Shown piece after piece: positions 6,091-64,000 of a stretch of DNA of 64,000 bases. How positions within the stretch are numbered: the stretch's first letter is position 1; each line of letters opens with the position of its first letter. This stretch comes from Diplonema japonicum (Eukaryota > Protista > Euglenozoa: Diplonemea), in NCBI GenBank assembly GCA_964019335.1, contig OZ025681.1, positions 186,001 to 250,000 of the forward strand. The letters are read 5' to 3'. The notes under the pieces are model-generated. The model was not told the DNA's origin. It worked only from the letters and a program-made list of their open reading frames with translations, and did not search any database. The translations under genes and the position numbers were made by a program.

Positions 6091-9000
6091 CTAATACGGC
6101 TGTGTCTCGACGCCCTTGACCCCCTCGAGGGTATCATCACCTCTTTCAGCATCTTCATCTTTGGCCACTGTGGCACCAACAACGAGACTCAGAACAACGA
6201 AAAGCAAGAAACAAAACGCCAGCCCCACGATGACAGCAATGGTGAGATTGTCCTTCCAGGTAGCAGAATACAAGTCCCCAATGTTAACGATCCCTGTGGC
6301 CATCTGAGAAACGGCAAAGGCGAAAACAGTGATCCCCATAAGGGAGTGGAGAACCTTGAAGATTAAACGGTGCTTGCCTTGCGGCTTCGAGACAAGCACT
6401 CCTATGACACCGATAACCACCTGGCACCATCCAACCACCAACAGCACAATACCGATTTCCTTATGTCTGTGGGAGGTCTCGTTTTCGAACTCGTAAAGTG
6501 CGACACTGAAGAATACTGTTGTGGCCACCATACTCCCCAACATCAGCACCGCATGCACTATGAAGGCAATGGGGACGCTCTTGATGGAACCGAGGTGCTT
6601 ACCTCCGAACCGTTTAACTGCAACTGCCATTGGGACGACATATGCCCACACGGTCACCATCGCTGTACCGTGTGCTTTTACTTTTTTCGAGTTGTCCTTT
6701 ACTAGTGTGGTGACAGCTCCGCCTGTTGTTGTTGTGATGGATGCTCCGAACCGAACCTCGTGCTGCGCTGCTGGGAAAGACGCTGTTTTGTGGTACGCCA
6801 CCACCATGTTCAGTGAGGGCTTCTTCCCGGTTGTGAATGTTACCTCGCTGTTCCCGTTTGTTTGTTGCACCGCTACTTCCCGTACTGCTCCGGTGGTGGT
6901 GTCTGTGAAGTCCCCCAGCTGGGCTGTCTCTACTACCTCAGATGTCGACTTTCCGTTGAGGTCGTAGAATTTTCCGTTTGTCGCTACCACCTTCGACCCC
7001 ACCATTCGGTTCTTTTCTTTCGGGAACCCTATCGCACCGTAGCCGGGAACACCGATGAACACTACAAGTACACGGAGCTCACCGTTTGGCATCTCCACCC
7101 AGTTGAACTCTGTTGTTGTGTCAAGCTTCACCATGCATGTGTAGCCGGTACGTGTTGATGGGGTGGGGCATGATGCTGGTGGTGATTGTGTTTCCGGTGC
7201 TTCAGTTGTCGTGTTCACAGGCAATGGTACCTCAGTCTCTACAACCGTTCCTTTGTGCAGTGTCATGAAGGTTGGTGTCCTTCTGCTTGGGCCGTGGTAT
7301 GTGATCTTATCATCTCCGTCTGCACCGTAAGCCAGCACGATGGGCATGGTTTCTGTCAGCAGGAATGCCCTGTCCTCCTTCTCGTTTGATGAAGTGATGC
7401 TTCGTACGATATTCCCGGTTGTTACTCCGTTCGATCGCTTGAAGCCCGAGATACGCCAATCAGCCTTACTCTCGTCCAATGCAGGTAGTGCTTTCATGCT
7501 GGCGTACCTGTCAGACACTACTGGGATGCCGTCTGCCCATTCCACCACTACCATGTCCGAGCCTATCATCCCATGATTTGTCTTGTCAGAGATTCCGAAA
7601 CCGATCCAACCTGTGGTCTTGACGGTCACAGACAGCTCCACAACATCTCTTACCACATTCGAGCAGATCTTGTAGTCGTCTGTAGCTTGTAGCGACCATG
7701 ATTTGCAGTTGTTTGCAGCACACATCAGTGAAGTGTTCCCGAACAGCTGCTCGTCAACGGGGTCCACAATATCGAAGAGGTCATGGGGGGGCTTGTCTTT
7801 TGGTGTCAAGTAGCCGCTGTTGTCAGGAGCCTTGCAGATCTCCGTTTTCTGATTGAGGTACCCACAGTACCTGAGACCCTTCTTGGGATACACATGAATG
7901 AAAGCCATGCACATTTCTGAATCAGTTCCATCACCGAAGCCAATGTCCACGTTACCATCGTTCACCATCTTGCAGTAGGAGTGGATCTCGTCACCAGCCA
8001 TGATCTGTGCCTTCACAGGATGGTTCAGCTGCAGGTTGAAGTCCCAGTACTCAATGTCCTCCAACACATGGACCTCCTTCCCATCCCTCCATACACTTGT
8101 GCGCTGTTCTCTTCCAAACAAGTGCATGTGGCCAGTGATGGAGAACACATTCAGGGGTTCAGAAATAGTGTTGTTCGTGCATTCCGCCGAGCACATCGTT
8201 TGGTATTCCTTCGTTGTTCCCGGCTTGATGATGTCCTTGATCTGAGCAAGAGTGTCCCCAACGTTCAAGATCTGAACATCATGCTTACGAAGTGTCTTCG
8301 TTAGCTCAAGAACGAAGCCAGATGCATCAACACCAGCATCAGCCATCTCTGAAGGGACATCGTAGTGGGAGTTCATAACTATGTACCTCCACCCCCTGCT
8401 GGGGTCGATTGACACCCTCAGACCCGCCTCACGTGGCATCACAACCTTGTTGGTCCCGACAGCCCACATCGCCCCAATCTCAAAACCAGCAGCATGGACC
8501 TGTGCCGAACAGGTGTTCACGGATTCATTGTTCCGGAAATAAAAGGGATGATTCTCCGTTGTCTCGTAAAGGAGGGAGTGGTGGAACTGGTAGTTCGGGT
8601 TGCCCACAGAGGTGTCTTCAATGTCGTACGACACAACGTGGTAGTCGCGGTCCGCAAGGTCGGGGAGGTAGTCCAGCATGTCGAAAGCATAGCAGGTGTA
8701 GATGGTCCTCTTCCCACCAACGGTGTAGTTCTTGTTCAACAGCTTGACAGTGACAAGATCAGTCTCAGGTGTGGTGAGCTCCTCCTCCCCACCCTTCATG
8801 AAGGTCATCGTTGCAACGCTCCTCCCTGCCCCGTGGTAGGCAAGAGTGTCCTGCCCAGGTTCCCCGTACGCAATCACAATCCGCATGGACCCCTTCACAA
8901 AGGGTCTGTCCTCGTTCGTGTCCTCAACTGTGATGGAGCGTCTCAGGGTCCCTGTGGTCACCCCGCCAGCTCTCTTGAAGCCCGAGATCGTCCAGTCTTC

Positions 9001-12000
9001 CCCACAGCTGTCCACATGAGGGGTCGCCTTCGCAGTTGCAAACCTGTCGCTCACCTTGGGTTCCCCGTTTGCCCACTCGATGATCGCCATGTCCGACCCG
9101 TGCATGGATCCACCGGTCTGCTCAGCAATCCCGAAACCGATCCATCCGGTGGTCTTCACAGTAAGGTCCATCACCACCTCGTCCCCTTCGATCTTGGAGC
9201 AGAGCATGTAGTCATCCTTCGCCTTGACGGTCCAGGTCTTGCAATTCTCAGGACACGGTGCAGAAGTGTTCCCGAACAGCTGCTCGTCAACAGGGTCCAC
9301 AATATCGAAGAGGTCATGGGGGGGCTTGTCTTTTGGTGTCAAGTAGCCGCTGTTGTCAGGAGCCTTGCAGATCTCCGTTTTCTGATTGAGGTACCCACAG
9401 TACCTGAGACCCTTCTTGGGATACACATGAATGAAAGCCATGCACATTTCTGAATCAGTTCCATCACCGAAGCCAATGTCCACGTTACCATCGTTCACCA
9501 TCTTGCAGTAGGAGTGGATCTCGTCACCAGCCATGATCTGTGCCTTCACAGGATGGTTCAGCTGCAGGTTGAAGTCCCAGTACTCAATGTCCTCCAACAC
9601 ATGGACCTCCTTCCCATCCCTCCATACACTTGTGCGCTGTTCTCTTCCAAACAAGTGCATGTGGCCAGTGATGGAGAACACATTCAGGGGTTCAGAAATA
9701 GTGTTGTTCGTGCATTCCGCCGAGCACATCGTTTGGTATTCCTTCGTTGTTCCCGGCTTGATGATGTCCTTGATCTGAGCAAGAGTGTCCCCAACGTTCA
9801 AGATCTGAACATCATGCTTACGAAGTGTCTTCGTTAGCTCAAGAACGAAGCCAGATGCATCAACACCAGCATCAGCCATCTCTGAAGGGACATCGTAGTG
9901 GGAGTTCATAACTATGTACCTCCACCCCCTGCTGGGGTCGATTGACACCCTCAGACCCGCCTCACGTGGCATCACAACCTTGTTGGTCCCGACAGCCCAC
10001 ATCGCCCCAATCTCAAAACCAGCAGCATGGACCTGTGCCGAACAGGTGTTCACGGATTCATTGTTCCGGAAATAAAAGGGATGATTCTCCGTTGTCTCGT
10101 AAAGGAGGGAGTGGTGGAACTGGTAGTTCGGGTTGCCCACAGAGGTGTCTTCAATGTCGTACGACACAACGTGGTAGTCGCGGTCCGCAAGGTCGGGGAG
10201 GTAGTCCAGCATGTCGAAAGCATAGCAGGTGTAGATGGTCCTCTTCCCACCAACGGTGTAGTTCTTGTTCAACAGCTTGACAGTGACAAGATCAGTCTCA
10301 GGTGTGGTGAGCTCCTCCTCCCCACCCTTCATGAAGGTCATCGTTGCAACGCTCCTCCCTGCCCCGTGGTAGGCAAGAGTGTCCTGCCCAGGTTCCCCGT
10401 ACGCAATCACAATCCGCATGGACCCCTTCACAAAGGGTCTGTCCTCGTTCGTGTCCTCAACTGTGATGGAGCGTCTCAGGGTCCCTGTGGTCACCCCGCC
10501 AGCTCTCTTGAAGCCCGAGATCGTCCAGTCTTCCCCACAGCTGTCCACATGAGGGGTCGCCTTCGCAGTTGCAAACCTGTCGCTCACCTTGGGTTCCCCG
10601 TTTGCCCACTCGATGATCGCCATGTCCGACCCGTGCATGGATCCACCGGTCTGCTCAGCAATCCCGAAACCGATCCATCCGGTGGTCTTCACAGTAAGGT
10701 CCATCACCACCTCGTCCCCTTCGATCTTGGAGCAGAGCATGTAGTCATCCTTCGCCTTGACGGTCCAGGTCTTGCAATTCTCAGGACACGGTGCAGAAGT
10801 GTTCCCGAACAGCTGCTCGTCAACAGGGTCCACAATATCGAAGAGGTCATGGGGGGGCTTGTCTTTTGGTGTCAAGTAGCCGCTGTTGTCAGGAGCCTTG
10901 CAGATCTCCGTTTTCTGATTGAGGTACCCACAGTACCTGAGACCCTTCTTGGGATACACATGAATGAAAGCCATGCACATTTCTGAATCAGTTCCATCAC
11001 CGAAGCCAATGTCCACGTTACCATCGTTCACCATCTTGCAGTAGGAGTGGATCTCGTCACCAGCCATGATCTGTGCCTTCACAGGATGGTTCAGCTGCAG
11101 GTTGAAGTCCCAGTACTCAATGTCCTCCAACACATGGACCTCCTTCCCATCCCTCCATACACTTGTGCGCTGTTCTCTTCCAAACAAGTGCATGTGGCCA
11201 GTGATGGAGAACACATTCAGGGGTTCAGAAATAGTGTTGTTCGTGCATTCCGCCGAGCACATCGTTTGGTATTCCTTCGTTGTTCCCGGCTTGATGATGT
11301 CCTTGATCTGAGCAAGAGTGTCCCCAACGTTCAAGATCTGAACATCATGCTTACGAAGTGTCTTCGTTAGCTCAAGAACGAAGCCAGATGCATCAACACC
11401 AGCATCAGCCATCTCTGAAGGGACATCGTAGTGGGAGTTCATAACTATGTACCTCCACCCCCTGCTGGGGTCGATTGACACCCTCAGACCCGCCTCACGT
11501 GGCATCACAACCTTGTTGGTCCCGACAGCCCACATCGCCCCAATCTCAAAACCAGCAGCATGGACCTGTGCCGAACAGGTGTTCACGGATTCATTGTTCC
11601 GGAAATAAAAGGGATGATTCTCCGTTGTCTCGTAAAGGAGGGAGTGGTGGAACTGGTAGTTCGGGTTGCCCACAGAGGTGTCTTCAATGTCGTACGACAC
11701 AACGTGGTAGTCGCGGTCCGCAAGGTCGGGGAGGTAGTCCAGCATGTCGAAAGCATAGCAGGTGTAGATGGTCCTCTTCCCACCAACGGTGTAGTTCTTG
11801 TTCAACAGCTTGACAGTGACAAGATCAGTCTCAGGTGTGGTGAGCTCCTCCTCCCCACCCTTCATGAAGGTCATCGTTGCAACGCTCCTCCCTGCCCCGT
11901 GGTAGGCAAGAGTGTCCTGCCCAGGTTCCCCGTACGCAATCACAATCCGCATGGACCCCTTCACAAAGGGTCTGTCCTCGTTCGTGTCCTCAACTGTGAT

Positions 12001-13911
12001 GGAGCGTCTCAGGGTCCCTGTGGTCACCCCGCCAGCTCTCTTGAAGCCCGAGATCGTCCAGTCTTCCCCACAGCTGTCCACATGAGGGGTCGCCTTCGCA
12101 GTTGCAAACCTGTCGCTCACCTTGGGTTCCCCGTTTGCCCACTCGATGATCGCCATGTCCGACCCGTGCATGGATCCACCGGTCTGCTCAGCAATCCCGA
12201 AACCGATCCATCCGGTGGTCTTCACAGTAAGGTCCATCACCACCTCGTCCCCTTCGATCTTGGAGCAGAGCATGTAGTCATCCTTCGCCTTGACGGTCCA
12301 GGTCTTGCAATTCTCAGGACACGGTGCAGAAGTGTTCCCGAACAGCTGCTCGTCAACAGGGTCCACAATATCGAAGAGGTCATGGGGGGGCTTGTCTTTT
12401 GGTGTCAAGTAGCCGCTGTTGTCAGGAGCCTTGCAGATCTCCGTTTTCTGATTGAGGTACCCACAGTACCTGAGACCCTTCTTGGGATACACATGAATGA
12501 AAGCCATGCACATTTCTGAATCAGTTCCATCACCGAAGCCAATGTCCACGTTACCATCGTTCACCATCTTGCAGTAGGAGTGGATCTCGTCACCAGCCAT
12601 GATCTGTGCCTTCACAGGATGGTTCAGCTGCAGGTTGAAGTCCCAGTACTCAATGTCCTCCAACACATGGACCTCCTTCCCATCCCTCCATACACTTGTG
12701 CGCTGTTCTCTTCCAAACAAGTGCATGTGGCCAGTGATGGAGAACACATTCAGGGGTTCAGAAATAGTGTTGTTCGTGCATTCCGCCGAGCACATCGTTT
12801 GGTATTCCTTCGTTGTTCCCGGCTTGATGATGTCCTTGATCTGAGCAAGAGTGTCCCCAACGTTCAAGATCTGAACATCATGCTTACGAAGTGTCTTCGT
12901 TAGCTCAAGAACGAAGCCAGATGCATCAACACCAGCATCAGCCATCTCTGAAGGGACATCGTAGTGGGAGTTCATAACTATGTACCTCCACCCCCTGCTG
13001 GGGTCGATTGACACCCTCAGACCCGCCTCACGTGGCATCACAACCTTGTTGGTCCCGACAGCCCACATCGCCCCAATCTCAAAACCAGCAGCATGGACCT
13101 GTGCCGAACAGGTGTTCACGGATTCATTGTTCCGGAAATAAAAGGGATGATTCTCCGTTGTCTCGTAAAGGAGGGAGTGGTGGAACTGGTAGTTCGGGTT
13201 GCCCACAGAGGTGTCTTCAATGTCGTACGACACAACGTGGTAGTCGCGGTCCGCAAGGTCGGGGAGGTAGTCCAGCATGTCGAAAGCATAGCAGGTGTAG
13301 ATGGTCCTCTTCCCACCAACGGTGTAGTTCTTGTTCAACAGCTTGACAGTGACAAGATCAGTCTCAGGTGTGGTGAGCTCCTCCTCCCCACCCTTCATGA
13401 AGGTCATCGTTGCAACGCTCCTCCCTGCCCCGTGGTAGGCAAGAGTGTCCTGCCCAGGTTCCCCGTACGCAATCACAATCCGCATGGACCCCTTCACAAA
13501 GGGTCTGTCCTCGTTCGTGTCCTCAACTGTGATGGAGCGTCTCAGGGTCCCTGTGGTCACCCCGCCAGCTCTCTTGAAGCCCGAGATCGTCCAGTCTTCC
13601 CCACAGCTGTCCACATGAGGGGTCGCCTTCGCAGTTGCAAACCTGTCGCTCACCTTGGGTTCCCCGTTTGCCCACTCGATGATCGCCATGTCCGACCCGT
13701 GCATGGATCCACCGGTCTGCTCAGCAATCCCGAAACCGATCCATCCGGTGGTCTTCACAGTAAGGTCCATCACCACCTCGTCCCCTTCGATCTTGGAGCA
13801 GAGCATGTAGTCATCCTTCGCCTTGACGGTCCAAGTCTTGCACACATCTGCACAATTTATTAAGAAAGGCAAAAGAAGAAACACAGCAAAGCACTGCGTG
13901 TTGCGTGACAT
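6091..13911 (-). CDS. Large membrane protein: signal peptide, 4 x (DOMON + copper type II ascorbate-dependent monooxygenase, DBH/MOXD1-like), 2 DOMON domains, cytochrome b561
   Basis: First ATG at 13911 followed by a hydrophobic leader. Each module has DOMON motifs (GWIGFG, GSMHGSD, AYHG) and Cu ligands FHHSL, NSHYD, GHMHLFG, EMCM. The C-terminus has about 5 TM helices with 4 His (KAHG, IVHA, RHKEIG, VLHSLMG). Confidence 0.92.
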   Translation of the reverse strand: MSRNTQCFAVFLLLPFLINCADVCKTWTVKAKDDYMLCSKIEGDEVVMDLTVKTTGWIGFGIAEQTGGSMHGSDMAIIEWANGEPKVSDRFATAKATPHVDSCGEDWTISGFKRAGGVTTGTLRRSITVEDTNEDRPFVKGSMRIVIAYGEPGQDTLAYHGAGRSVATMTFMKGGEEELTTPETDLVTVKLLNKNYTVGGKRTIYTCYAFDMLDYLPDLADRDYHVVSYDIEDTSVGNPNYQFHHSLLYETTENHPFYFRNNESVNTCSAQVHAAGFEIGAMWAVGTNKVVMPREAGLRVSIDPSRGWRYIVMNSHYDVPSEMADAGVDASGFVLELTKTLRKHDVQILNVGDTLAQIKDIIKPGTTKEYQTMCSAECTNNTISEPLNVFSITGHMHLFGREQRTSVWRDGKEVHVLEDIEYWDFNLQLNHPVKAQIMAGDEIHSYCKMVNDGNVDIGFGDGTDSEMCMAFIHVYPKKGLRYCGYLNQKTEICKAPDNSGYLTPKDKPPHDLFDIVDPVDEQLFGNTSAPCPENCKTWTVKAKDDYMLCSKIEGDEVVMDLTVKTTGWIGFGIAEQTGGSMHGSDMAIIEWANGEPKVSDRFATAKATPHVDSCGEDWTISGFKRAGGVTTGTLRRSITVEDTNEDRPFVKGSMRIVIAYGEPGQDTLAYHGAGRSVATMTFMKGGEEELTTPETDLVTVKLLNKNYTVGGKRTIYTCYAFDMLDYLPDLADRDYHVVSYDIEDTSVGNPNYQFHHSLLYETTENHPFYFRNNESVNTCSAQVHAAGFEIGAMWAVGTNKVVMPREAGLRVSIDPSRGWRYIVMNSHYDVPSEMADAGVDASGFVLELTKTLRKHDVQILNVGDTLAQIKDIIKPGTTKEYQTMCSAECTNNTISEPLNVFSITGHMHLFGREQRTSVWRDGKEVHVLEDIEYWDFNLQLNHPVKAQIMAGDEIHSYCKMVNDGNVDIGFGDGTDSEMCMAFIHVYPKKGLRYCGYLNQKTEICKAPDNSGYLTPKDKPPHDLFDIVDPVDEQLFGNTSAPCPENCKTWTVKAKDDYMLCSKIEGDEVVMDLTVKTTGWIGFGIAEQTGGSMHGSDMAIIEWANGEPKVSDRFATAKATPHVDSCGEDWTISGFKRAGGVTTGTLRRSITVEDTNEDRPFVKGSMRIVIAYGEPGQDTLAYHGAGRSVATMTFMKGGEEELTTPETDLVTVKLLNKNYTVGGKRTIYTCYAFDMLDYLPDLADRDYHVVSYDIEDTSVGNPNYQFHHSLLYETTENHPFYFRNNESVNTCSAQVHAAGFEIGAMWAVGTNKVVMPREAGLRVSIDPSRGWRYIVMNSHYDVPSEMADAGVDASGFVLELTKTLRKHDVQILNVGDTLAQIKDIIKPGTTKEYQTMCSAECTNNTISEPLNVFSITGHMHLFGREQRTSVWRDGKEVHVLEDIEYWDFNLQLNHPVKAQIMAGDEIHSYCKMVNDGNVDIGFGDGTDSEMCMAFIHVYPKKGLRYCGYLNQKTEICKAPDNSGYLTPKDKPPHDLFDIVDPVDEQLFGNTSAPCPENCKTWTVKAKDDYMLCSKIEGDEVVMDLTVKTTGWIGFGIAEQTGGSMHGSDMAIIEWANGEPKVSDRFATAKATPHVDSCGEDWTISGFKRAGGVTTGTLRRSITVEDTNEDRPFVKGSMRIVIAYGEPGQDTLAYHGAGRSVATMTFMKGGEEELTTPETDLVTVKLLNKNYTVGGKRTIYTCYAFDMLDYLPDLADRDYHVVSYDIEDTSVGNPNYQFHHSLLYETTENHPFYFRNNESVNTCSAQVHAAGFEIGAMWAVGTNKVVMPREAGLRVSIDPSRGWRYIVMNSHYDVPSEMADAGVDASGFVLELTKTLRKHDVQILNVGDTLAQIKDIIKPGTTKEYQTMCSAECTNNTISEPLNVFSITGHMHLFGREQRTSVWRDGKEVHVLEDIEYWDFNLQLNHPVKAQIMAGDEIHSYCKMVNDGNVDIGFGDGTDSEMCMAFIHVYPKKGLRYCGYLNQKTEICKAPDNSGYLTPKDKPPHDLFDIVDPVDEQLFGNTSLMCAANNCKSWSLQATDDYKICSNVVRDVVELSVTVKTTGWIGFGISDKTNHGMIGSDMVVVEWADGIPVVSDRYASMKALPALDESKADWRISGFKRSNGVTTGNIVRSITSSNEKEDRAFLLTETMPIVLAYGADGDDKITYHGPSRRTPTFMTLHKGTVVETEVPLPVNTTTEAPETQSPPASCPTPSTRTGYTCMVKLDTTTEFNWVEMPNGELRVLVVFIGVPGYGAIGFPKEKNRMVGSKVVATNGKFYDLNGKSTSEVVETAQLGDFTDTTTGAVREVAVQQTNGNSEVTFTTGKKPSLNMVVAYHKTASFPAAQHEVRFGASITTTTGGAVTTLVKDNSKKVKAHGTAMVTVWAYVVPMAVAVKRFGGKHLGSIKSVPIAFIVHAVLMLGSMVATTVFFSVALYEFENETSHRHKEIGIVLLVVGWCQVVIGVIGVLVSKPQGKHRLIFKVLHSLMGITVFAFAVSQMATGIVNIGDLYSATWKDNLTIAVIVGLAFCFLLFVVLSLVVGATVAKDEDAERGDDTLEGVKGVETQPY
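7729..13842 (-). repeat. Four-copy 1533-bp (511-aa) in-frame tandem repeat
   Basis: Identical ORF-track entries recur at 7981/9514/11047/12580 (period 1533). The only differences I saw are single bases near the array ends. Confidence 0.95.
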
Positions 13912-13965: not shown

Positions 13966-14046
13966 CTGTAAAAAAGATCAAAAAAAGCACAAAAAAGCCA
14001 CGGGAAAGCAAAGAATAAAAAAAAAGGAAATACGAAAGAAAATACA
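13966..14046 (-). promoter_or_regulatory. Putative trans-splice acceptor (polypyrimidine tract + AG) for the monooxygenase mRNA
   Basis: Minus strand reads ...gtgctttttttgatcttttttacAG|gtttctc... about 55 nt upstream of ATG 13911. Confidence 0.45.
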
Positions 14047-15483
14047 TCACAAGCGGAACCCGTAATCAGATGACACCTTGTCCCGCTGCGCAGGCGAGAG
14101 AGAAGGGTGCCAAATGTCAATGATGAGAACCAATCTATCGTCAGGCCCATTGTTCCAGACGTGGTGTGTGAAGCTATCATCGATAACAAGCACGCCAGAT
14201 TGTTGCCACTGCTTCGTGACGTTCCCGACGGTAATACCACAGGCGATCTCAGTGCCGTCAACATGACGCATCGCGTCGCAGGAAGCGGGAACAGAAATAC
14301 CAAGATGAACGCGATTCTTGTGATTGGTGGGACCAGAATGCGGTGATATGCTCCCGCCAGCTTGAAGCAAGCTGAACCCAACGAAACCTTTAGGAATACG
14401 AGGGAACGTCGATTCGATGAGAGATGATGTGAACGGGAGTTTTTCACGGAAAATCGCGGACGTCGACGACTCGTGCCCGTTGACAAATAGCGAGAACTCA
14501 CGCCAGAACCCGTTAGAGAGCGACACGTGTTCGTTTGTCTCCAACATAAGAGAAGATGACAGGAACGCATATTCCTCGAGAATTCGAGGAACCGCTTTTT
14601 GAAGATCTTGTAGAATAGTATGAAGCGCACCTTCCACCACAGGAAACGGCGATGACTCTAAACCGCCCACAAGGTAGGAGACCATCTGGTCCGGCCGTTC
14701 CCACACACCACGTCGAAGCGCTTTCTGTACAACATCCCTTCGATTCTCTTCCGTCTTTGCAAGAGACACCATTTTGTAAAATGTCGACCCCGCTCCCATG
14801 GTGCTTCCCCCGTACGCTTCATCCGACACCGCAAGTTTGAAGAGAACTTCCGCGGTATCATGGTGGCTCAGTGAATATGCTGTATGCCCCATATCTGCGA
14901 TTTCCATGCTCGTTGCTGTAGATGCTATGCTCGTCTCAAGGACGGTTGTTCCCGCTGAGAGAGATACAATGAATGACCCGTAAGGGGTGGTGGAGCATGA
15001 TGTGGATTCGATAATGTTTGAGGCCTTCTGAAGGGGTTCTCCGAGGGATACAAGCGATTTTGCCAGATATATTGCTTCCGTGCAGTCGTTTTCGGATAGG
15101 CTCGCGGATTCTAAGGTGGATTTGACTTCTAGCATGGATTTTCTGTTTCCTCGATCGGAGGACTCGAATAAGATTCTGCCCAGTTTTTTTCTCACGTTAT
15201 TTGTGAATTTCGACGTCGGTGCGGAAGTTAAAAGTTCTTTGTATGCTGATTCTGCTAAACGGTGTGCTTTTACCCCTTCAGCTGCTATTCCAAGATTGTA
15301 CAAGAGCTCAGGTCGTTTTGGGGCGGCGAGTACCGCTTGTCTGATGTACTCTAACCGTTCCATGCCTTCGGTACGAGCAGCTTTTTCCATTAACATTTTC
15401 GCTTTTTCCAGGTCCTCTCCCAGTGTGGTGGTCACAGTGAATGTTAATAAAACAGTTGTGACCAGAAATATTGGGTTTTTCAT
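14047..15483 (-). CDS. Secretory TPR-containing aspartyl/asparaginyl beta-hydroxylase-family (Fe(II)/2-oxoglutarate) oxygenase
   Basis: Signal peptide, TPR-like helices (ELLYNLGIAA), and C-terminal AspH-type motifs SPHSGPTN..RVHLG, DDSFTHHVWN, RLVLIIDIWHP. Confidence 0.9.
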   Translation of the reverse strand: MKNPIFLVTTVLLTFTVTTTLGEDLEKAKMLMEKAARTEGMERLEYIRQAVLAAPKRPELLYNLGIAAEGVKAHRLAESAYKELLTSAPTSKFTNNVRKKLGRILFESSDRGNRKSMLEVKSTLESASLSENDCTEAIYLAKSLVSLGEPLQKASNIIESTSCSTTPYGSFIVSLSAGTTVLETSIASTATSMEIADMGHTAYSLSHHDTAEVLFKLAVSDEAYGGSTMGAGSTFYKMVSLAKTEENRRDVVQKALRRGVWERPDQMVSYLVGGLESSPFPVVEGALHTILQDLQKAVPRILEEYAFLSSSLMLETNEHVSLSNGFWREFSLFVNGHESSTSAIFREKLPFTSSLIESTFPRIPKGFVGFSLLQAGGSISPHSGPTNHKNRVHLGISVPASCDAMRHVDGTEIACGITVGNVTKQWQQSGVLVIDDSFTHHVWNNGPDDRLVLIIDIWHPSLSPAQRDKVSSDYGFRL

Positions 15484-32087: not shown

Positions 32088-32615
32088 CCCCTAAACGCCC
32101 GGAGCCTATCTACGGTACCCCCCCCATTTTCGTTGTTGCTTTGAATACTCAAAAAAAGGGCAGCATGCAACCATAGGAAGGTGCAAGGAAAGGGTAAACG
32201 GTACTAAAATTTTCAATTCCAGGTGCCAGATTCAGATGAGAACACTTAACTTTGTGTGTAAGAGGGGGGTTGAGGGGGTACTTTTTATGTCCGATTTTGG
32301 GGGGTCTTGTCGTGGGGGGTCCGTGGAGTTATGGCTGGGCTAAAAAGGGCAGCATTCAGCCCTATTTGGTGCCCTGAACTCTAGGATGGAGGTCAGTCTG
32401 GAGACTTTTTGGGGCTGTGGGATGAAAAAAGCAACTTGTGAGTTTTCTTTCAGCTGGGGTAGCATGCAAGGGTAAAAACACGTTTTGCATAAGGGGGCTT
32501 TGCAACAGGGGCACCACGTTTGCACCTTCTTCCCGCACCCAAGAACAGCACAGAGCACCCTCCTCACCTTCGTTCCGTTCATCATGGACAACACTAGCTC
32601 TTCACTGCCTTTCAT
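32088..32615 (-). mobile_element. piggyBac-like transposon 3' remnant (Cys-rich C-terminal domain and terminus)
   Basis: RRVLCAVLGCGKKVQTWCPCCKAPLCKTCF resembles the piggyBac transposase C-terminal zinc finger. The island begins at ATAA|CCCCTAAACGCCC, resembling a TTAA|CCC end. Confidence 0.55.
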
Positions 32616-34677
32616 CGTGGTCTTCGAACTTCCTTTTCACACCCCTCTTTTCGGGAGAAGCCTCCTTGCGCCTTGCCAGAAGAAGTACCCGAATGGACTC
32701 AACTTTGCCCTCCTCAGCCGCGTAGAACAGTGGGGTGAGCCCCTCCCCGTCCCTCACACAAGGGTCCTGCTCGTAGGAATCCAGTAGCAGCTGCATCGTC
32801 TCAGTACAGCGTTTAGCAGCCATGTGCAATGGAGTGCGCCCCCGATAGTCCCTCACACAAGGGTCCTGCTTGTACTCATCGATGAGGAGCTTCACCATCT
32901 CCAAGCTGCCCCCTGCCGCCCTGTGCAAGGGTGTCTCGTCATTGTTGTCCCTCATGCTAGGGTCCACTTTGCACTCATCGAGGAGGTACCTCATCACCTC
33001 CATGCACCCTCTACCTGCTGCTTCGTGGATGACGGGGCTTCTAGCTGACTCGGTGCAGGGGTCAAGCTTGCACTCCTCGACAAAGTACTTCACCACATCA
33101 ACTTGGTTGTTCCTTGCCGCTCCTTGCAAGGGTGTGATGCATGTCCCATTCTTCGGGTCAAGCTTGCAGACTTCAGTGAGATACTTGACCACATGCAGTT
33201 GTCCCCACTCTGCTGCGATGTCCATGGATCCGGGTCCGAAGCCATAGACAGTCCTTGAGCCAGGGTTTTGCTTGTGAACTTCGACAAGGTGCCTCACTGC
33301 CTCCAGCTCACCATGTCGTGCTGCATACATAATAGGCGTGAACACCTTGTCCTGGACCGTCAGCTCCTGCTTGTAAACATTGACGAGACAGTCAATTGCC
33401 TCAAGCTTGCCATTCCCCGCAGCGAAGTGGAGAGGTGTAGTGCCGTCGGTGTCCCTTGCCCCAGGGTCCAGCTTGTACTCGTCGATGAGGAGCCTCATGG
33501 CCTCCACATGACCATTAAGTGCTGCCACATGAAGGCAGGAGGTCCCTTCATCATCCACAAGGCTGGGGTCAAGCTTGCACTCTTCGATGAAATACCTCAT
33601 CACATCAACATGGTTGTGTTCTACCGCACAGTACAAGCCACTCTTATTCTTCATCCCACCAGGGTCAACCTTGCAGACTTCAGTGAGATACCTGACAACA
33701 TGCAAGTGGTTGCGACCCACAGCAAGGTCTATGGGTGCCATGCCTCTATTGTCTCTCAAATGGGGGTCCAGCTTAAAGTCACTCACGAGCCACTCCAGTG
33801 ATTGAAGCCTTCCCGCTTTCGCTGCGTGGTGGACGAGAGTTGCACCGCTGGGTTCCATAACCGCAGGGTCTTGCTTGCACCCCTCAATGAGATACTTCAT
33901 AGCCTCGAATTGGCCTTCTGTGAGAAGGACTGCAACAAGGCCATCGGCAGTCGGGGTCGCGGGGTCTATCTTGCACACCTCAATGAGGTACCTCAAGGCC
34001 TCCACGTGACCTCCCAGTGCCGCCCTGTGAATGTGAGCATAGCCCTCATCGTCCTCACCGCTTGGGTCTTGCTTGCAAACTTCGACAAAATACTTCATCA
34101 CATCAACGTTGTTGTACAGTGCCGCCATGTGCAAGGGTGTCATGCCTGTCCCATCCTTCATCCCAGGGTCAAGCTTGCAGACTTCAGTGAGATACCTGAC
34201 CACATGCAGCTGTCCCCACTCTGCTGCGATGTCCATGGGTGCTAAGCCGTCTGTGGTCCTTGAGCCAGGGTTTTGCTTGTGAACTTCGACAAGGTGCCTC
34301 ACTGCCTCCAGCTGACCATGTCGTGCTGCATACATAATAGGACCGAGGCCGAATACCTCGTCGCCGACCGTCAGCTCCTGCTTGTAAACATTGACGAGAC
34401 AGTCCATTGCCGCAAGCTTGCCATTCCCCGCAGCAAAGTGGAGAGGTGTGGTGCCCTTGGTGTTCCTTACCCCAGGGTCCAGCTTGTACTCGTCGATGAG
34501 GAGCCTCATGGCAGCGACCTCATCGTGCTTTGCTGCAGTGTGCAAAGCTGTCAAACCACGCGGACCAGTCACACTTCTGTGAACCCCGTACTTCTGAATG
34601 ATTGCCCTCATGTGTTGGAGGTTGCCTGTCGCAGCAGCGGACTCCACCTCGCCAAACACTTCATTGTCCTCATCCAT
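32602..34677 (-). CDS. Multi-ankyrin-repeat protein
   Basis: 691-aa ORF of ~34-aa repeats (TPLHFAAGNG, TPLHMAA, C/YKxDP) with an internal higher-order duplication. Confidence 0.9.
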   Translation of the reverse strand: MDEDNEVFGEVESAAATGNLQHMRAIIQKYGVHRSVTGPRGLTALHTAAKHDEVAAMRLLIDEYKLDPGVRNTKGTTPLHFAAGNGKLAAMDCLVNVYKQELTVGDEVFGLGPIMYAARHGQLEAVRHLVEVHKQNPGSRTTDGLAPMDIAAEWGQLHVVRYLTEVCKLDPGMKDGTGMTPLHMAALYNNVDVMKYFVEVCKQDPSGEDDEGYAHIHRAALGGHVEALRYLIEVCKIDPATPTADGLVAVLLTEGQFEAMKYLIEGCKQDPAVMEPSGATLVHHAAKAGRLQSLEWLVSDFKLDPHLRDNRGMAPIDLAVGRNHLHVVRYLTEVCKVDPGGMKNKSGLYCAVEHNHVDVMRYFIEECKLDPSLVDDEGTSCLHVAALNGHVEAMRLLIDEYKLDPGARDTDGTTPLHFAAGNGKLEAIDCLVNVYKQELTVQDKVFTPIMYAARHGELEAVRHLVEVHKQNPGSRTVYGFGPGSMDIAAEWGQLHVVKYLTEVCKLDPKNGTCITPLQGAARNNQVDVVKYFVEECKLDPCTESARSPVIHEAAGRGCMEVMRYLLDECKVDPSMRDNNDETPLHRAAGGSLEMVKLLIDEYKQDPCVRDYRGRTPLHMAAKRCTETMQLLLDSYEQDPCVRDGEGLTPLFYAAEEGKVESIRVLLLARRKEASPEKRGVKRKFEDHDERQ

Positions 34678-44889: not shown

Positions 44890-47800
44890 TCACACTAATC
44901 GGTCACCGTTCTGCGGTTGCTGTCTGGTGCCTGCAGTGGCTGTTTGTCGCGATGAGATGGACGGCATCTGGGCGAGAAACATTGCTTGGAGTCGTGCTAG
45001 GTAGGGGGCGGTTTGGCTCGAGGAGAAGAGTGGTCTCCTGTCGTAGCCGTGTGTCGTCGGGCCCCCAAGATGTCGAAGGGTGTGTACCCTTGTCTTTGCG
45101 TTGGCGGGGAAAGCATTCTTCCCACTCTTTGCTGTGCATTTCTGAATACGTCCTAAGATGTATCGCATCCTTCCAGCCTTCTCTGTGAGCCAGTCCTGGT
45201 CGTCGAGGGGTCCAGCCAAGGACTGCCGGGTGGCCTGCTCATAGTCTACTGCGAGCTCCATCGTCGTGACGGACGTCAACTTCCTGCCTGCGTACCATCT
45301 TAGGCTTTTCAGCCACCTGAGGACGCTCTTCATGTAGAACATTAGGACCTTTCCCGACGCTCCGTTCGATTTCAACAGCTCCACTGTGGGCACAGTGTGC
45401 TGCTTCCCCGTTGTGATCTCATCCCACGGGTTGGTGGTGAGGATTCTGGTGCTCCGTTCAGCCGCTCTGGCGTCTCGTCTTGTCACTACATCCAACAGGT
45501 ATCGTTGCACGACTGCCGCCTGTTGCTTCGCAGCCCCCGTTGCGCCCCTTGGAATGATCCCGTGGAGGGCGGTCACTGCAGGTAGGTCACTTCGTGTCAT
45601 CCCGCCATATCTTTCGTTTGTCAGGGCAGCTCTCGCTGGTGCACATTCCCATAGGGCGTGCTCCGTGACTTCTGTCGTCGTCTGGCATCGATGGTCGCAG
45701 ACGTCGCACGCAAGAGACGAGCTTTCCACACCCTCACGTTCATCCAATTGCTTCCCCCACACTCGAGGGTGTACCGTGAACACTGCACCGCTGATGATCC
45801 GCCGCAGTCTGTACGATATCAGCGGTCTCCGTGACTGGAGCTTCCTCCACCAGGCGTTCGTGGACGGACATGCACCCGCTTCCATTCCAGCAAAAGACGA
45901 CCTGCCGTGGATCAATTCCTTTGCAACAGCCGGTCTGATCGCCTGTCTTACTTCATGGCGTCTCGCACTGGGCACCAGAGCGCGCAAACCTTCAATGAAG
46001 GACCACCCCTTGTTCAGGAAGGGTAGCCACCTCTTCAGCAAGACCCCTAGCGGCCCCCTCTCCTCGTCGTCCTCTCGCTCCCGGTACAGTGTAACAATCT
46101 CATTGACTCGCTGCCACAGTTGTGGGGAGGTGAGGCTTTCTCGCACCAGGCAGTTCACCGTGTTGTAAACAATCTTCGCTTGTGGATATGCTGTGTGTCC
46201 AGGTAACAGCACATTGAGCACAGCCATCGGGGATCTCATCCTGAAGCGCGGTCCCCACAGGGAAGTCACCGTCGCTGTACAGAGCTTCTTCAGCTGGTTG
46301 TCAGACGGCGCAGCGTAGGTCGTACCGTATAGACAGGATGGTAGCACAGTGCCCGTCAGCATTGACGCCTTGTTCCCGAAGCTTAATGGCAATGCACCAA
46401 GCCGGGACAAACGGCCTTCGGCGGAATGTAGCTTGTCCAAACTATGTTTCCCGTTCATGTTCAGGATCACGCCAAGCGCCTTGATCCCCTTCGTCACTCT
46501 GAACGATGAGCCTGTGCACTTCAACCAAGGGCCGATCTCATCCTTCGTCGAGAATGCTTGTGACTTGTTTTCGTTAAGGCGCATGCCTGTCCGCTCGCAA
46601 AACTCGATTGTTTTGTTGGTCGCTCTCTTGAGTACCTCGACCAAACGCGCAAGTAGGTACGCGTCGTCCGCGTACGACAGCGATCGCGAGCCAGGTACCT
46701 CAGCAATCACGCACTTCACCATCACTGACACCAGAGCGTTCACCAGGATGACGGAGATTGGACACCCTTGGAGAATTCCATTTGTCACGTGGAACTCGGA
46801 ACCCACGCCAGTAGGGAAGCGGAAACGTCTTTTGAGGCCTGCGTACATCGCTTTGAGCGGGGTCAGTATCCTCTGGTGCAAACCCAGGTCTTGCATAAGC
46901 CCGAACGCTACTTTCTGTGGCACCCTGTCGAAGCACTTGACGAAGTCCAGTGCTATGCCGTTAAGAGGGGTGTTGGTCAGCATCGCCGTCTCCAGCTGCG
47001 TGCTGAGCTCCATCAGGATGCTGTCCGTCCCGTGACGTGGTCGAAAACCATGCTGCGAGTCGTCCGCCCATTTCTCTTGCCATGGCGATATATCACGCAA
47101 CCTGGCACAGGCCCACAGTCTGTAGACCGCACTCGTGACTGTGATGGGGCGGTGGTTGAGCGGGGTCCTCTCGCCTCCCTTCGGGATCAGCGTAACCAAC
47201 GCCGTCAGGAGTGCCTTCGGCCACTTCCCTGTCACCTCGATGGCGTTGAAGAGCATCGCCCACGCATCCAACAATACATTTGGCATAGCGCGAAGTTCTG
47301 CCATCCTCCACCCATCAACTCCCGGTGCTGTCCTCGTCGATTTCTTGGCCAGAACTGCTCTCAGATCAGCCCCTGTCAGTGGCTGGAGCACCATGTCATG
47401 CGTCGAGATGTATGGCCCGTATCTAGCCTTGAAAGCCTCGTACGATGGTTCTTCATGCCCTTCACCGTACATCTGGAGCACGCCGTCCCATTCCGCGTGC
47501 ATCATCCTGTCCATCTCGTCGAGGTCTGCGGTCAGCACTCCGCCGCTCTCCACTGCCTGCGCCGCTGACGTAGAAGTGTTTTTCACAAAGGCGGTCATCC
47601 CCCTCCGCTCCTCCTGGAACTGGGTGTTGATCCTCGCCTCGTACTTCTTCTCCCGCTCCACTCTCGTGTCCTTTGCGATCTCGCGTAGTAGCGAGGAGAG
47701 GTTGTCGTCTAGCAGTTGAAGTCTGGTGACAATCGACTCCAGGTCATCCTTCAGCAAGTTCCTATCAAATACTGGAGGGTTCGGCAGTTTCTCCAGCAAA

Positions 47801-48736
47801 CTCAGAGCATTCGCCCAAGTCTTCAACAGAACTACTGGCATGTTGCACACTTGTCCCTTGTCAATCATCACCTGGATTTCCGCGCTGATGTGTGCAAGCT
47901 TCCTCTGCAAACAGGCAATCGACTTCTGTCTACCCACCGCTGCGCCCGTGGCTTCCTTTACAGACTTGGCCGACAGGCATTTCTCCTTGGGTTTGCGCTC
48001 CTCGCCCCTCCCTCGGAAAGTCTTCTGTTGCTCCCTCGGCACGCCTGTGATGCAGTGTCTTTCCGAGACGTCAGCCAGCACACGGTATGCGCCGTCGATG
48101 TCCTCAAGTTTTTGGATGAATCTCTCCGCCTGTAGCAGCTCAATCACGTGGTCATCACTAGCAGTCGACACCGGCAGTTCCTTCGGGATGAAGTACTTGC
48201 GTGTCTTGCTCTTGAGAGTAGGGATACACAGTTTGATGGAGAGGCATCTGTGTTCGTTGGTATACACCGTGTCGTGGACCCACGCCTTCTGTAGTCCCGC
48301 CGCAGCGATCGGGTTCATCAAGACGTAGTCGATGCGTGTCTTTGTGTCAGTGGCTCTCCTCACAAAGGTGTGGCTCGGCCTTACCCCGTCTTTCTCGGCC
48401 TGCATTGCTGCTGCATCCACCCAGTCACACCCAACCGCCTGCTGTAGTACACCTGATTGCGACACCTCGGTGTTTAGGTCCCCCGCGACGATGATAGGAA
48501 CATCTCCCAGGGCACATCTCATCTCGTTCAGCACCTTGTTCAAAAGTGTCTCACGCTGGTGTTTGCCGTAACTTCCCGAGTGGCAATATACCACCGTGTC
48601 CGTGTGCGGTCAGCTTCACTTCCTGCAAGCACGAGATGTCGCTCTCCATGGCCAACACCTCGTCCACCTTATTGCTCAGGGACCCCACATTGAGAGTTGT
48701 GATTGTGAGCGAATTGGGGTCCCTAGCTCCACCCAT
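44890..48736 (-). CDS. LINE pol: AP endonuclease (broken at ~48597 by deletion/frameshift), reverse transcriptase, CxxC...H...C knuckle
   Basis: TLNVGSL, CLQEVK, VAGDLN, RIDYVL; RPITV, QHGFR, LDFVKCFDRV, GILQGCPIS, YADD; CDVC...EHALWEC. Confidence 0.88.
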
Positions 48737-48775: not shown

Positions 48776-51070
48776 TCAGTTGAACTCGTCAGGGTCATGT
48801 TCGATTGGTAGGATGGGGGTCATAGTGTTAGCTATGGCCATGTGCACGTCAGGTGTGGCCGCACATGTCGGTGTGCCGCCGGGCAGGTATATCGGTGTCA
48901 TCGAACCCGTTGCACTCGTGGGGACAAGGGCACCCGAATGTGCCTTCTTGCTGGTCGTCGTGTCGTCGCATTTCCTCTTCTTGTCCGTGCGCTTCGCAGT
49001 CTGGATGTCCTGCTGGATAGACTGGACAGTCTTAACCAGCTCGGACACCGCCACAGCCACCGCATCCAACCTCTCGAGACGTGTTGTTACCATCTCCATC
49101 TGCCTGCCGAGAGCTTGCATGTTCTGCTCCATCGACTTCACTAGCGAGATGGTCGCGGCAGCCTTCCTCTCCATGTCCACCACTCTCGCTTCCATCGCTT
49201 TCCTCTCCTGCTCGTGCTCCAGCTCTTTCTTCCGCGCCCACTCCTCGAAAGCGTCGACAGACGCCATCGTTTTCGTAGCAGGTGCTGGCGCGTTCGGTGG
49301 GGGTAGAGCCTCGGCTACCGGCGTTGAGTGCGTCGCAGGTGTTGACGCAGCGTGGTGTGTTGACGCCTGCGTGTCCGACACTGGCGCAGGTGTAGGCGCG
49401 GATGATGGGTTCGCCTGCCCGGCTTGTCTGCCCCATATGGCGTTCGGCGGCAATGTGAATACGGCCTTATTACTGTCACTCGCGCCCTTCTTGTTCTTCT
49501 TCTTCTTCTGCAGGTCACCCTCCAGCGGCTGGATGGTCCAACGCGTGCCCTGGACATTCAGAACCAGACCTCTCGGTTTCGAGCACGAAGTCACGGCCCA
49601 GGATTGTTTTTCGCCAAACCTATGCAGCCTCTTCCTCACCGTGACCGGCCATCCCGACCGTTTCAAGCGGTCTTCCAGCTCGAGGCCGTTCATCGAAGAG
49701 GGCACCCCTTGTACCTCATAGTGCTCGCCGTCGAGCAGTGTCGCTGCTGTCGCTGTCACCTTCAGATCGGCATGTCGGTCTTTGAGCACCCGCCTTGCTG
49801 TGTCAAGCTCGGCTTTCGGTACCCTTACCCCGTAGACGACGGACTTGCCCGACTTCTTGAAGGTCAGTCCCCATCCGCACACTTCACGCCTGAACAGCAG
49901 TGCCGCTTTCAGTGTCGTGCCCTCCAGCCACAAAACCGGCAGGAGATCGCGTGCTTCCCACGGTTGGCGCACAAACACGCCGTCCTCGCCACTGCGCATG
50001 AGGATCGACTGGACATCGGTCTTCATCACCGTGATTGGGACCTCGAAAACGCCGTCCCGCTTCCTGCCTCTCTTGGTGAGGTACCGCCCTGCTCTCTCTC
50101 TCAGCCATGTCAATACTCTCGACCTGGCCTTCTCGGCGTCCAGCGATGTTTGAGCAACCAGATAGAGTTCCGAGGTGCAGGTCTCCGGCTCCTCCAGCTC
50201 CTCCTCTTCCTCCATCTCCTCCTTGTTTGCGTCCGGCATCGCAGGGTGACCATTGCGGGATGTCACCTGCAGGCGTCTGCACGTCTTCCCGCGCCCTTCG
50301 TTCGTGCTCAGAAGGACCTCAGCCTCCTCGCCGCAGAAGTAGGGGAGACGTCCCCACGAAACGACCGTTGCAGCCGGCGCGCCCCTTAGCCACTCCGCTG
50401 CCAACCGTTCAGAGCCTTGCGGGACAAGGTACACCGCCCGCTCCGGCTGTGTCTCCGCCCCTTCCCACTCCCGCACGTGCACGGGCCACTCGTCCTCGGC
50501 AAGGCATGCGATGATGGCCTTGCGTGCCGGCTTGCCCTGCTCCTTCTTCTTCCCGTCCTTCGCGCCCTCGCTGCGGATGGGGAGTGGGATCCTCACCGGC
50601 GGCACATACGCTGTAGTGGTAGGCATCTTCGAGTCCTCCCCTTTCACCGCGCAGACGTAGTGGCCCTCCACATAGCCCAGCCATAGCGTGGCCGTGTCTG
50701 GTACCTCATTCCTACTCCCCGGCTCGAAGCAGCTCAGGGTGAGGACGTCATCCCTTACAGCAAAGACACAGATCCTGCGTCCCATCACCACGGACATCGT
50801 GCTGACCGTCAGCCTGTCCGCCCACGTTCCCGAAAGAGCTACCAGCCTCTGGTACTCCTTCCACGCCGCAGCCTTCTCCCCTTCCTCCACCATCATGAAG
50901 GAGGAGTAGTCCTTCCCCGCCAGATGAGAGGCCACCACCTCCCGCAGCGCCCCCGCCTCGTCCCTCGCGCCGTGCACCGCGTACGACACCGCTTCGAAGA
51001 AGCACTCTCCCTGCCTTCTTCCGGTGTCTATCACCTTCCAACCCTCCAGCCTATTGGCCAGATCCTGCAC
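48776..51070 (-). CDS. LINE ORF1-like region: N-terminal OTU-like cysteine protease, low-complexity linker, coiled coil
   Basis: GECFFEAVS...LRE.V...GTWAD...LGYVEGHY matches the OTU Cys/Trp/His boxes. The frame is open to the element's 5' edge with no ATG, so it is truncated. Confidence 0.8.
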   Translation of the reverse strand: MQDLANRLEGWKVIDTGRRQGECFFEAVSYAVHGARDEAGALREVVASHLAGKDYSSFMMVEEGEKAAAWKEYQRLVALSGTWADRLTVSTMSVVMGRRICVFAVRDDVLTLSCFEPGSRNEVPDTATLWLGYVEGHYVCAVKGEDSKMPTTTAYVPPVRIPLPIRSEGAKDGKKKEQGKPARKAIIACLAEDEWPVHVREWEGAETQPERAVYLVPQGSERLAAEWLRGAPAATVVSWGRLPYFCGEEAEVLLSTNEGRGKTCRRLQVTSRNGHPAMPDANKEEMEEEEELEEPETCTSELYLVAQTSLDAEKARSRVLTWLRERAGRYLTKRGRKRDGVFEVPITVMKTDVQSILMRSGEDGVFVRQPWEARDLLPVLWLEGTTLKAALLFRREVCGWGLTFKKSGKSVVYGVRVPKAELDTARRVLKDRHADLKVTATAATLLDGEHYEVQGVPSSMNGLELEDRLKRSGWPVTVRKRLHRFGEKQSWAVTSCSKPRGLVLNVQGTRWTIQPLEGDLQKKKKNKKGASDSNKAVFTLPPNAIWGRQAGQANPSSAPTPAPVSDTQASTHHAASTPATHSTPVAEALPPPNAPAPATKTMASVDAFEEWARKKELEHEQERKAMEARVVDMERKAAATISLVKSMEQNMQALGRQMEMVTTRLERLDAVAVAVSELVKTVQSIQQDIQTAKRTDKKRKCDDTTTSKKAHSGALVPTSATGSMTPIYLPGGTPTCAATPDVHMAIANTMTPILPIEHDPDEFN

Positions 51071-63100: not shown

Positions 63101-64000
63101 AGACCCACCTCGCATCTCGGAAGCTGCGGGAGCTTCGCTAGCACCTTTATAGCATTCGCCCAAGTCCTCAGCAGCTGCTCCGGCATGTTGCTTGCTAGTC
63201 CCCTGTCGAGCAGATCTTGGACTCCCGCAAGGATGTGCGAGACTTTCCGCTTCACCTCGGCGATGCACTTCTGCCAGCCCACTGCCGCACCTGTCGCCTC
63301 AACCACAGATTTCGCCGACAGGCACTTCTCCTTTGGTTGTCGCGCCACGCTTCTCCCGACGTAGGCCCTCCGTCTCACCGCTGGCAGGTCCCCGATGCAG
63401 CATTCCTCCGAAACGCACGCTAACGTACTATACGCATCGTCAATGTCGCCGTCGCCCAGCTTCTGCGCAAATCCCCCGACCTGTAGCAGCTCAGCAACTC
63501 GGTCATCATCAGCAGCTTCCATCGGCAACTCCCTCGGGACGAAGTATTTCCTCGTCATGCACTTGAGGGCCGGGATCCGGAGCTGGATTGAGAGGCAGCG
63601 GTGCTCGTTGGTGTAGACTGCGTCGTGTACCCACACCTTCTGTAGGCCTGCCGCCGCGATCGGGTTCAGCAGAACGTAGTCGATACGCGTCTTCGTGTTG
63701 GTGGCCTGCCTGGCAAAGGTGTGGCATGGTTCCACGCCATCCCTCTCGGCTTGCAGCATAGCAGCATCCACCCAATCGCTCCCCACCGCCTGTTGTAGCA
63801 CTCCCGACTGTGACACCGCGGTGTTGAAATCGCCTGCCACGATGATCGGTACGTCACCGAGGACGCATCTCATCTTGTTCAGGACCTTATCCAGCAGAGC
63901 CTCCCGCTGGTGCTTGCCGTGACCGCCCGAGTGACAGTAGACTACGATCAGGTAACCACATATCTCGACCATCTAGGTTGATCATCGAGTGTACCCACCT
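60194..64000 (-). mobile_element. Non-LTR retrotransposon copy 2 (runs off the window); ORF 60244-63972 encodes APE C-half, RT and knuckle
   Basis: Collinear with copy 1 (VAGDFN, RIDYV, YADD, CDVC..EHALWEC). Apparent frameshift near 63960, since the upstream frame reads RWVHSMINLDGRD. Confidence 0.92.

Follow-up and report, generated by a model that had tools for sequence, protein, structure and literature searches.

The 64,000-nucleotide stretch of the Diplonema japonicum genome analyzed here (contig OZ025681.1 of assembly GCA_964019335.1, positions 186,001 to 250,000; hereafter the window, whose own numbering is used throughout) contains on its minus strand a gene for a protein of 2,606 amino acids in which a signal peptide is followed by four successive modules, each made of a DOMON and a copper monooxygenase resembling dopamine beta-hydroxylase (DBH), then by a fifth DOMON, a Thr/Pro linker, a sixth DOMON and a five-helix cytochrome b561. 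The reading that we favor, at somewhat better than even confidence, is that of a membrane protein whose copper monooxygenase modules, facing the outside or a lumen, would be fed from cytosolic ascorbate through the b561 and the DOMON haems. As textbook partners, DBH-type enzymes and b561 are distinct proteins; their natural fusion provides direct genetic evidence that the two cooperate outside animals, in what would be a compact system for studying how electrons cross a membrane to reach a copper oxygenase. Moreover, diplonemids rank with the most abundant heterotrophs of the sea, and a surface oxygenase working without external reductant may bear on the way they process dissolved or prey-derived organic matter.

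A preliminary description of this DNA had proposed a single chain of about 2,600 residues with the architecture given above, and every item of it proved right when examined through the open frame, Pfam, homologues and protein fold.

One gene with four identical modules

In the window, the gene occupies a minus-strand open frame running from 13929 to 6091, i.e., 2,612 codons without internal stop. Its intron-free coding sequence (6091..13911, minus strand; 2,606 codons plus stop) begins at the first ATG (13909-13911), ends at the stop codon (6091-6093) and has a G+C content of ~53%, as against ~35% in the flanks. A protein search retrieved from the EukProt transcriptome of D. japonicum (EP01064) a complete open reading frame (ORF) of 1,584 amino acids, P0001, which is 100% identical to the deduced protein and carries two units in this Trinity assembly. 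Since this ORF spans the signal peptide, a unit-to-unit junction and the b561 tail, all these parts are joined on one mRNA, in agreement with the earlier view of one gene and not of separate transcripts. It is thus a real, expressed and single gene of D. japonicum. Separate genes, contradicted by the single open frame and by the single transcript with a complete ORF, were rejected, as was a pseudogene.

All parts of the protein are encoded on the minus strand. The signal peptide (residues 1-20, 13852..13911; hydrophobic core at residues 5-26 in a hydropathy scan) precedes module 1 (residues 24-534, 12310..13842), which comprises a putative haem-type DOMON, a copper monooxygenase and a disordered tail of ~25 residues, and which was delimited by Pfam, by alignment with human DBH (PDB 4zel), by AlphaFold (AF2) modeling and by Foldseek. 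Module 2 (residues 535-1045, 10777..12309) and module 3 (residues 1046-1556, 9244..10776) are DNA-identical to module 1, while module 4 (residues 1557-2068, 7708..9243) is identical down to window position 7760 and differs only in its final linker residues. At the nucleotide level, the four modules, 100% identical, form a perfect tandem array (7760..13833; 6,074 bp, period 1,533 bp, 3.96 units, zero mismatches).

Genome assemblers classically go wrong on perfect 1.5-kb repeats and the Trinity transcript has two units only, both of which would speak for a copy number inflated, or for separate genes wrongly joined, during assembly or annotation. However, when Logan unitigs from public runs were aligned to one unit and to the unique 3′ part of the gene, unit, junction and flank depths stood at 4 : 3 : 1 in two studies. 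In run X1, depth was 484.5 for the repeat unit (4.0x) and 365.7 for the unit-to-unit junction (3.0x), with 121.2 for the unique tail, 114.4 for the downstream flank and 92.5 for the signal-peptide junction; the corresponding values in run X5 were 71.8, 49.2, 15, 14.6 and 18.8. Run X1 is possibly the assembly's own HiFi data and so maybe not independent, whereas X5, from another study (2020), is independent. Run X6 gave a unit depth of ~3x, at low coverage, and run X3 an uneven profile with unit depth below flank depth, which may reflect 3′-biased RNA. In three studies, the repeat unit was contained in one unitig, free of branches and of variant letters. The assembly of D. japonicum YPF1604 was moreover built from HiFi reads at 102x with a mean length of ~9 kb (PMC13598402), and reads of this length could span the array. 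As for the transcript, a short-read assembler is expected to collapse identical repeats, hence its two units, and its complete ORF joins both ends of the gene. An artefact is accordingly rejected as very improbable and, because of the fourfold unit and threefold junction depths in two studies, we conclude that the four identical copies are real. The four catalytic modules of the preliminary description are therefore present, but as four identical copies and not as four different enzymes; they are the product of a very recent or continually homogenized in-frame amplification.

Copper sites, probable haem-type DOMONs and the b561 tail

Both catalytic domains were called by Pfam in four copies each, far over the cut-offs (Cu2_monooxygen, E = 4e-41; Cu2_monoox_C, E = 1e-76), together with five DOMONs (E = 2e-83). 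Aligned with human DBH, a module gives E = 4e-20 across DOMON and catalytic core, and every copper ligand is matched: H244, H245 and H316 for CuH and H395, H397 and M467 for CuM in module 1, with their counterparts in every module. This alignment bears out the full set of copper ligands previously claimed for the four modules. In 50 single-module relatives, the ligands are invariant or at least 90% conserved, and the AF2 module model based on these relatives (pLDDT 88.7, pTM 0.88) matches 4zel_A in Foldseek with E = 8.4e-35 and TM 0.68 over 476 columns, PHM entries following at ~1e-16. An ESM Atlas search returned only ordinary DBH-like clusters, with scores of 0.80 and below. As judged from alignment and model, the modules are DBH homologues of the two-copper monooxygenase type. 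The DBH-type C-terminal dimerization domain is absent, the module stopping ~25-40 residues past the core in a disordered linker; the last ~25 residues of each module are disordered in the AF2 model, which would make the connection between modules flexible.

Regarding the DOMONs, each of the six has a candidate pair of haem ligands, as had been noticed earlier: M70/H160 in module 1 (shifted by +511 in each further module), M2115/H2206 in DOMON5 and M2303/H2384 in DOMON6. DOMON5 (residues 2069-2229, 7225..7707), recognized by Pfam and fold, is an orphan copy with 51% identity to the module DOMON. It is separated by a Thr/Pro/Ser-rich linker (residues 2230-2247, 7171..7224; pLDDT <50 in the AF2 model) from DOMON6 (residues 2248-2399, 6715..7170), a membrane-proximal domain of CYBDOM type that was not called by Pfam and was recovered through the alignment of relatives and through its fold, a beta sandwich with pLDDT 75-87 in the AF2 model. 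In seven aligned D. japonicum DOMONs, the Met is invariant within a G-x-M-x-G-S/A-D/K motif and the His is accompanied by an Arg four residues on. The pair (M47 and H137 in DOMON numbering) is invariant in the 50 single-module relatives, on a par with the copper histidines. In a broader set of 204 DOMON stretches taken from the best matches, the Met is found in 185, the His in 168 and both in 155. Among the 14 relatives that share the tail, most carry the DOMON6 Met, and conservation of H2384 is 90% or more.

Human DBH, by the 4zel alignment, has neither Met nor His at the aligned positions. According to the literature, the DOMON of DBH does not bind haem or sugar, while CYBDOM DOMONs retain Met and His around an 'M-G-x-D' motif (PMC10691727). 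The module DOMON model also matches in Foldseek the haem b cytochrome domains 6jt6, 4qi3 and 1pl3, and the fold of DOMON5 is similar to that of both the DBH DOMON (Z 12.8) and the CDH cytochrome domain (Z 10.2); a profile of the seven DOMONs run against PDB sequences gave chance matches only. The assignment to a haem type thus draws on conservation, spacing, motif and fold, and not on a residue-by-residue placement on the CDH ligands. Since the Met/His pair is kept as in CYBDOM proteins whereas human DBH is devoid of both residues, the modules combine a CYBDOM-like DOMON, probably haem-binding, with a DBH-type core. Moreover, because the pair is as conserved as the copper ligands in the sampled protist relatives, these comparisons suggest that, in most lineages, the long enigmatic DOMON of these enzymes serves as a cytochrome through which electrons enter.

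The membrane region (residues 2400-2584, 6160..6714) is, by its fold, four conserved histidines and a weak Pfam match, a cytochrome b561, as the preliminary description had it. The Cytochrom_B561 match reaches 20.9 bits in hmmscan (cut-off 23) and 27.3 bits in a six-frame genome search, and no other membrane family of Pfam matches the tail. H2414, H2453, H2483 and H2522 are borne by four successive helices (helices 1-4), and in an alignment of 14 relatives sharing the tail (A1), H2414, H2483 and H2522 never vary and conservation of H2453 is 90% or more. The AF2 model of the tail (pLDDT 70.5 overall, 75-95 in DOMON6-b561) has five long helices, and its residues 338-506 superpose on residues 43-220 of Arabidopsis b561 (4o7g_A) with Z 13.7 and an rmsd (root mean square deviation) of 2.9 over 161 residues; the match with human Dcytb (5zle) has Z 13.4, and Foldseek gives a probability of 1.00. 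A Z near 13 is by itself possible among helical bundles; the top three helical structure matches of the model are, however, all b561, and the histidines occupy the expected positions. By sequence, the C-terminal part gave no real match in the PDB, homologues retrieved with the tail regions were limited to the transcript of the gene itself and a handful of CYBDOM-only proteins, and a metagenome scan with the tail alignment found no relative.

In the classical six-helix layout of CYB561A and Dcytb, the core occupies helices 2-5 and each terminus is in the cytosol. The present protein departs from it: five helices are modeled, and the superposition on the plant b561 begins at residue 43 of the latter, helix 1 being missing. 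This five-helix arrangement is to be compared with CYBDOM proteins, in which the b561 core lies on helices 1-4 with the N-terminus outside (PMC10691727), and with Arabidopsis HYP1, which has five helices, a DOMON with M90/H174, an apical H211-H278 pair and a cytosolic H245-H314 pair (PMC10784544). As, by topology, H2414 and H2483 stand at the start of helices entering the membrane from outside and H2453 and H2522 at the start of helices entering it from the cytosol, the first pair would hold the outer haem and the second the cytosolic one. With five helices and an outside N-terminus, the acidic C-terminal tail (residues 2585-2606, 6094..6159) is predicted to be cytosolic. The Met-His spacing is 81 residues in DOMON6 versus 84 in HYP1. 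In addition, P2510, R2515 and K2519 precede H2522 by 12, 7 and 3 residues, the same spacing, in a comparison of spacing and not of alignment, as that between H314 of HYP1 and P302, R307 and N311, its modeled ascorbate site (PMC10784544).

A proposed tethered electron route and its alternatives

In the favored scheme, cytosolic ascorbate would reduce the inner b561 haem, and electrons would traverse the membrane to the outer haem and from there reach the DOMON6 haem, as proposed for the plant CYBDOM HYP1. They would then pass, via DOMON5 and the flexible chain, to the DOMON haem of each module, which would reduce CuH and CuM for O2 activation and C-H hydroxylation of a substrate. No soluble reductant would then be needed outside, which would fit a free-living marine cell, and the four copies would multiply the catalytic sites per anchor. 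The presence in the genome of an aldonolactone oxidase-type gene (77 bits) makes ascorbate synthesis plausible. We infer this electron route by precedent, from the conduit of three haems that has been proposed for HYP1 and from CDH-to-LPMO transfer. In chromaffin granules, b561 provides reducing equivalents for DBH (PMC10691727), and HYP1, taking electrons from ascorbate in the cytosol, reduces extracellular Cu(II) and Fe(III) (PMC10784544).

Several observations weigh against this scheme. The hmmscan score of the b561 falls under the Pfam cut-off, and AF2 confidence is low for the last strand of DOMON5, the one bearing H2206. The outermost modules lie up to ~2,000 residues from the membrane and, the linkers being disordered, such a distance makes a fixed wire unlikely; the models make a tethered chain working through collisions more likely than a rigid wire. 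Finally, the same haem-type DOMON is found in paralogues anchored by a single helix (the C7 paralogue, P0011 and P0012, described below), so that modules can presumably obtain electrons without a fused b561.

These paralogues and the long flexible chain, which speaks against a direct wire, are also in favor of an indirect coupling, which is the main rival and which we regard as unlikely, albeit deserving serious attention. According to this alternative, the tail would regenerate ascorbate from monodehydroascorbate, or reduce Fe(III)/Cu(II), within the compartment of the copper sites, which would use soluble ascorbate, and the module DOMONs would be structural or regulatory. Such is the known relation between DBH and b561 in chromaffin granules (PMC10691727), and the CYBDOM HYP1 is a ferric and cupric reductase (PMC10784544). 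However, the Met/His pair is invariant in the copper monooxygenase modules of this clade and lost in animal DBH, which is a user of soluble ascorbate, and such ascorbate would be lost to sea water if the protein stands on the surface of the flagellate. The perfect identity of the four units and the disordered linker of ~25 residues closing each of them would also suit a polyprotein, which would be cleaved within the linkers into a free CYBDOM and four soluble monooxygenases of identical sequence, the array only raising dose under polycistronic transcription. Euglena has polyproteins with repeated units, and near-identical repeated modules occur in a second diplonemid genome (P0007 and P0012, below). 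Nevertheless, the linker, inspected by eye, contains no dibasic or other recognizable processing site, the C7 paralogue keeps diverged modules in one anchored chain, implying that multi-module chains persist over time, and a one-module b561 fusion has been retained in Rhynchopus. Cleavage into separate enzymes is hence, in our opinion, less probable still than soluble ascorbate. Beyond the membrane-fed electron route that we favor, a wider proposal, put forward tentatively and with slightly less than even confidence, is that the protein is a self-powered, outside-facing oxygenase and that the Met/His DOMON is the built-in cytochrome of the sampled non-animal DBH-like enzymes, in a parallel to the feeding of LPMO by CDH, and was lost in animal DBH.

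Relatives, known systems and genomic surroundings

An exhaustive HMMER search of 1.84 billion representatives with module 4 and the tail as query gave 3,129 matches, and domains were mapped on the best 150. Copper monooxygenase and b561 occur together in only two of these 150, the gene's own transcript and P0010 from Rhynchopus euleeides (EukProt EP01061), a protein of 944 amino acids with a signal peptide, a DOMON, a copper monooxygenase, a second DOMON and a b561, all ligands being intact. The one-module fusion of Rhynchopus, which is devoid of the orphan DOMON5, shows at the level of the deduced proteins that the number four would not be essential. Within these best matches, the combination is thus confined to two diplonemid species and, in the literature on DOMON, b561, DBH, diplonemids and copper monooxygenases, no description of such a fusion was found, in line with the earlier suggestion of an undescribed system; these families go unmentioned in the papers on the D. 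papillatum genome and the P. papillatum proteome. In precomputed Pfam lists, b561 is never assigned to these proteins and, since it also scores under the cut-off, an architecture search based on Pfam would likely miss the fusion.

CYBDOM-only relatives were found in D. japonicum, D. ambulator and Flectonema, and most other diplonemid DBH-like proteins, e.g., P0011, P0012 and the C7 paralogue, end in a single helix. This D. japonicum paralogue (G000:C7; L020:2695-7410, minus strand; 1,571 amino acids) has a signal peptide, two diverged DOMON and copper monooxygenase modules, a third unit made of a DOMON and a degenerate monooxygenase-like domain, and a single-helix anchor; it is like the window protein in repeating modules within one chain and differs by their divergence, its anchor and the absence of b561. 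An amidase gene lies just upstream of it (L020:8325-9905). P0007 and P0012 have in common an exact block of 445 amino acids covering DOMON and copper monooxygenase, from which it appears that identical repeated modules recur in the family; both are located on one 1.455-Mb contig of another genome (ENA), probably diplonemid, and are likely to be pieces of one multi-module gene with identical repeats. In a module tree obtained by a quick method, these diplonemid proteins form one well-supported clade whose base is poorly resolved, and the modules of P0010 and of D. japonicum branch separately; this quick tree is compatible with one origin or two of the b561 fusion.

Among known systems, animal DBH with the b561 of chromaffin granules has in common with the diplonemid protein the catalytic fold, the six copper ligands and a DOMON before the catalytic core, as well as the same logic, cytosolic reducing power being brought by a b561 to a lumenal copper monooxygenase. 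The animal system, however, consists of two separate proteins with a six-helix b561, whereas the diplonemid protein is one polypeptide with four catalytic modules and a five-helix b561 of CYBDOM type, keeps the Met/His pair absent from animal DBH and is without the DBH dimerization domain. CYBDOM proteins (plant HYP1/CRR with an AIR12-type DOMON, animal FRRS1/SDR2, fly CG8399) likewise have an outside Met/His DOMON directly before a four-His b561, and HYP1 is similar in its five helices and in the spacing of the ascorbate-site residues. In known CYBDOMs, nevertheless, the terminal domain is a DOMON or a reeler and the substrates are chelates of Fe(III)/Cu(II), while the diplonemid protein adds a copper monooxygenase; to our knowledge, no CYBDOM with a copper monooxygenase has been described. 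Finally, cytochrome domains of CDH (4qi3, 4qi7 and 1pl3) are matched by the diplonemid DOMON models, and in the transfer from CDH to LPMO single electrons are passed to copper by a haem b domain that likewise has the DOMON fold, a Met/His pair and a flexible linker; for the diplonemid protein, such transfer is a proposal. In the CDH system, electrons come from a flavin dehydrogenase and the copper enzyme is separate and unrelated, in contrast with the membrane b561 and the fused DBH-type enzyme considered here.

In the D. japonicum genome, b561 has 13 matches and DOMON at least 29, some of which belong to other large fusions. One ORF of 2,714 amino acids (L022:1731-9875, minus strand; G000:C42:437730-445874) combines four desulfoferrodoxin/superoxide reductase domains, a DOMON, a b561, a cytochrome b5 and a guanylate/adenylate cyclase, and possibly senses superoxide on the outside, with the cyclase as its output. 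Another, of 1,504 amino acids (L023:4731-9245, plus strand; G000:C38), has a haem peroxidase, a DOMON, a b561, a cytochrome b5 and a cyclase. The lineage seems to make a habit of using DOMON-b561 anchors for redox enzymes that face the outside, and the copper gene would be the monooxygenase member of this series. DOMONs also occur in long arrays: an open frame of 1,634 amino acids (G000:C116:105540-108818, plus strand) has seven consecutive DOMONs, three of them with equal scores, and some of these copies may be identical. A JGI metagenome protein of 4,632 amino acids, P0006, is a very long DOMON array as well, with 20 stretches that match the query's DOMON portion.

Upstream of the gene in the window, a pyrimidine-rich tract (13966..14046, minus strand; 80% pyrimidine over 90 nt) starts directly after the stop codon (14047-14049) of the preceding same-strand gene and terminates in an AG (13966-13967) located 54 nt before the ATG; it resembles a spliced-leader acceptor inside a polycistronic unit. 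This preceding gene (14047-15483, minus strand) encodes a 478-residue aspartyl/asparaginyl beta-hydroxylase (PF05118, E = 5e-32), and no functional link of this oxygenase gene to the copper monooxygenase gene was found. Further along the window, the minus strand encodes a protein of 691 amino acids made nearly entirely of ankyrin repeats (32602-34677) and three LINE-type retrotransposons with long reverse-transcriptase ORFs (44890-48594, 48776-51070 and 60244-63972), all of them in G+C-rich islands and one also with an endonuclease domain.

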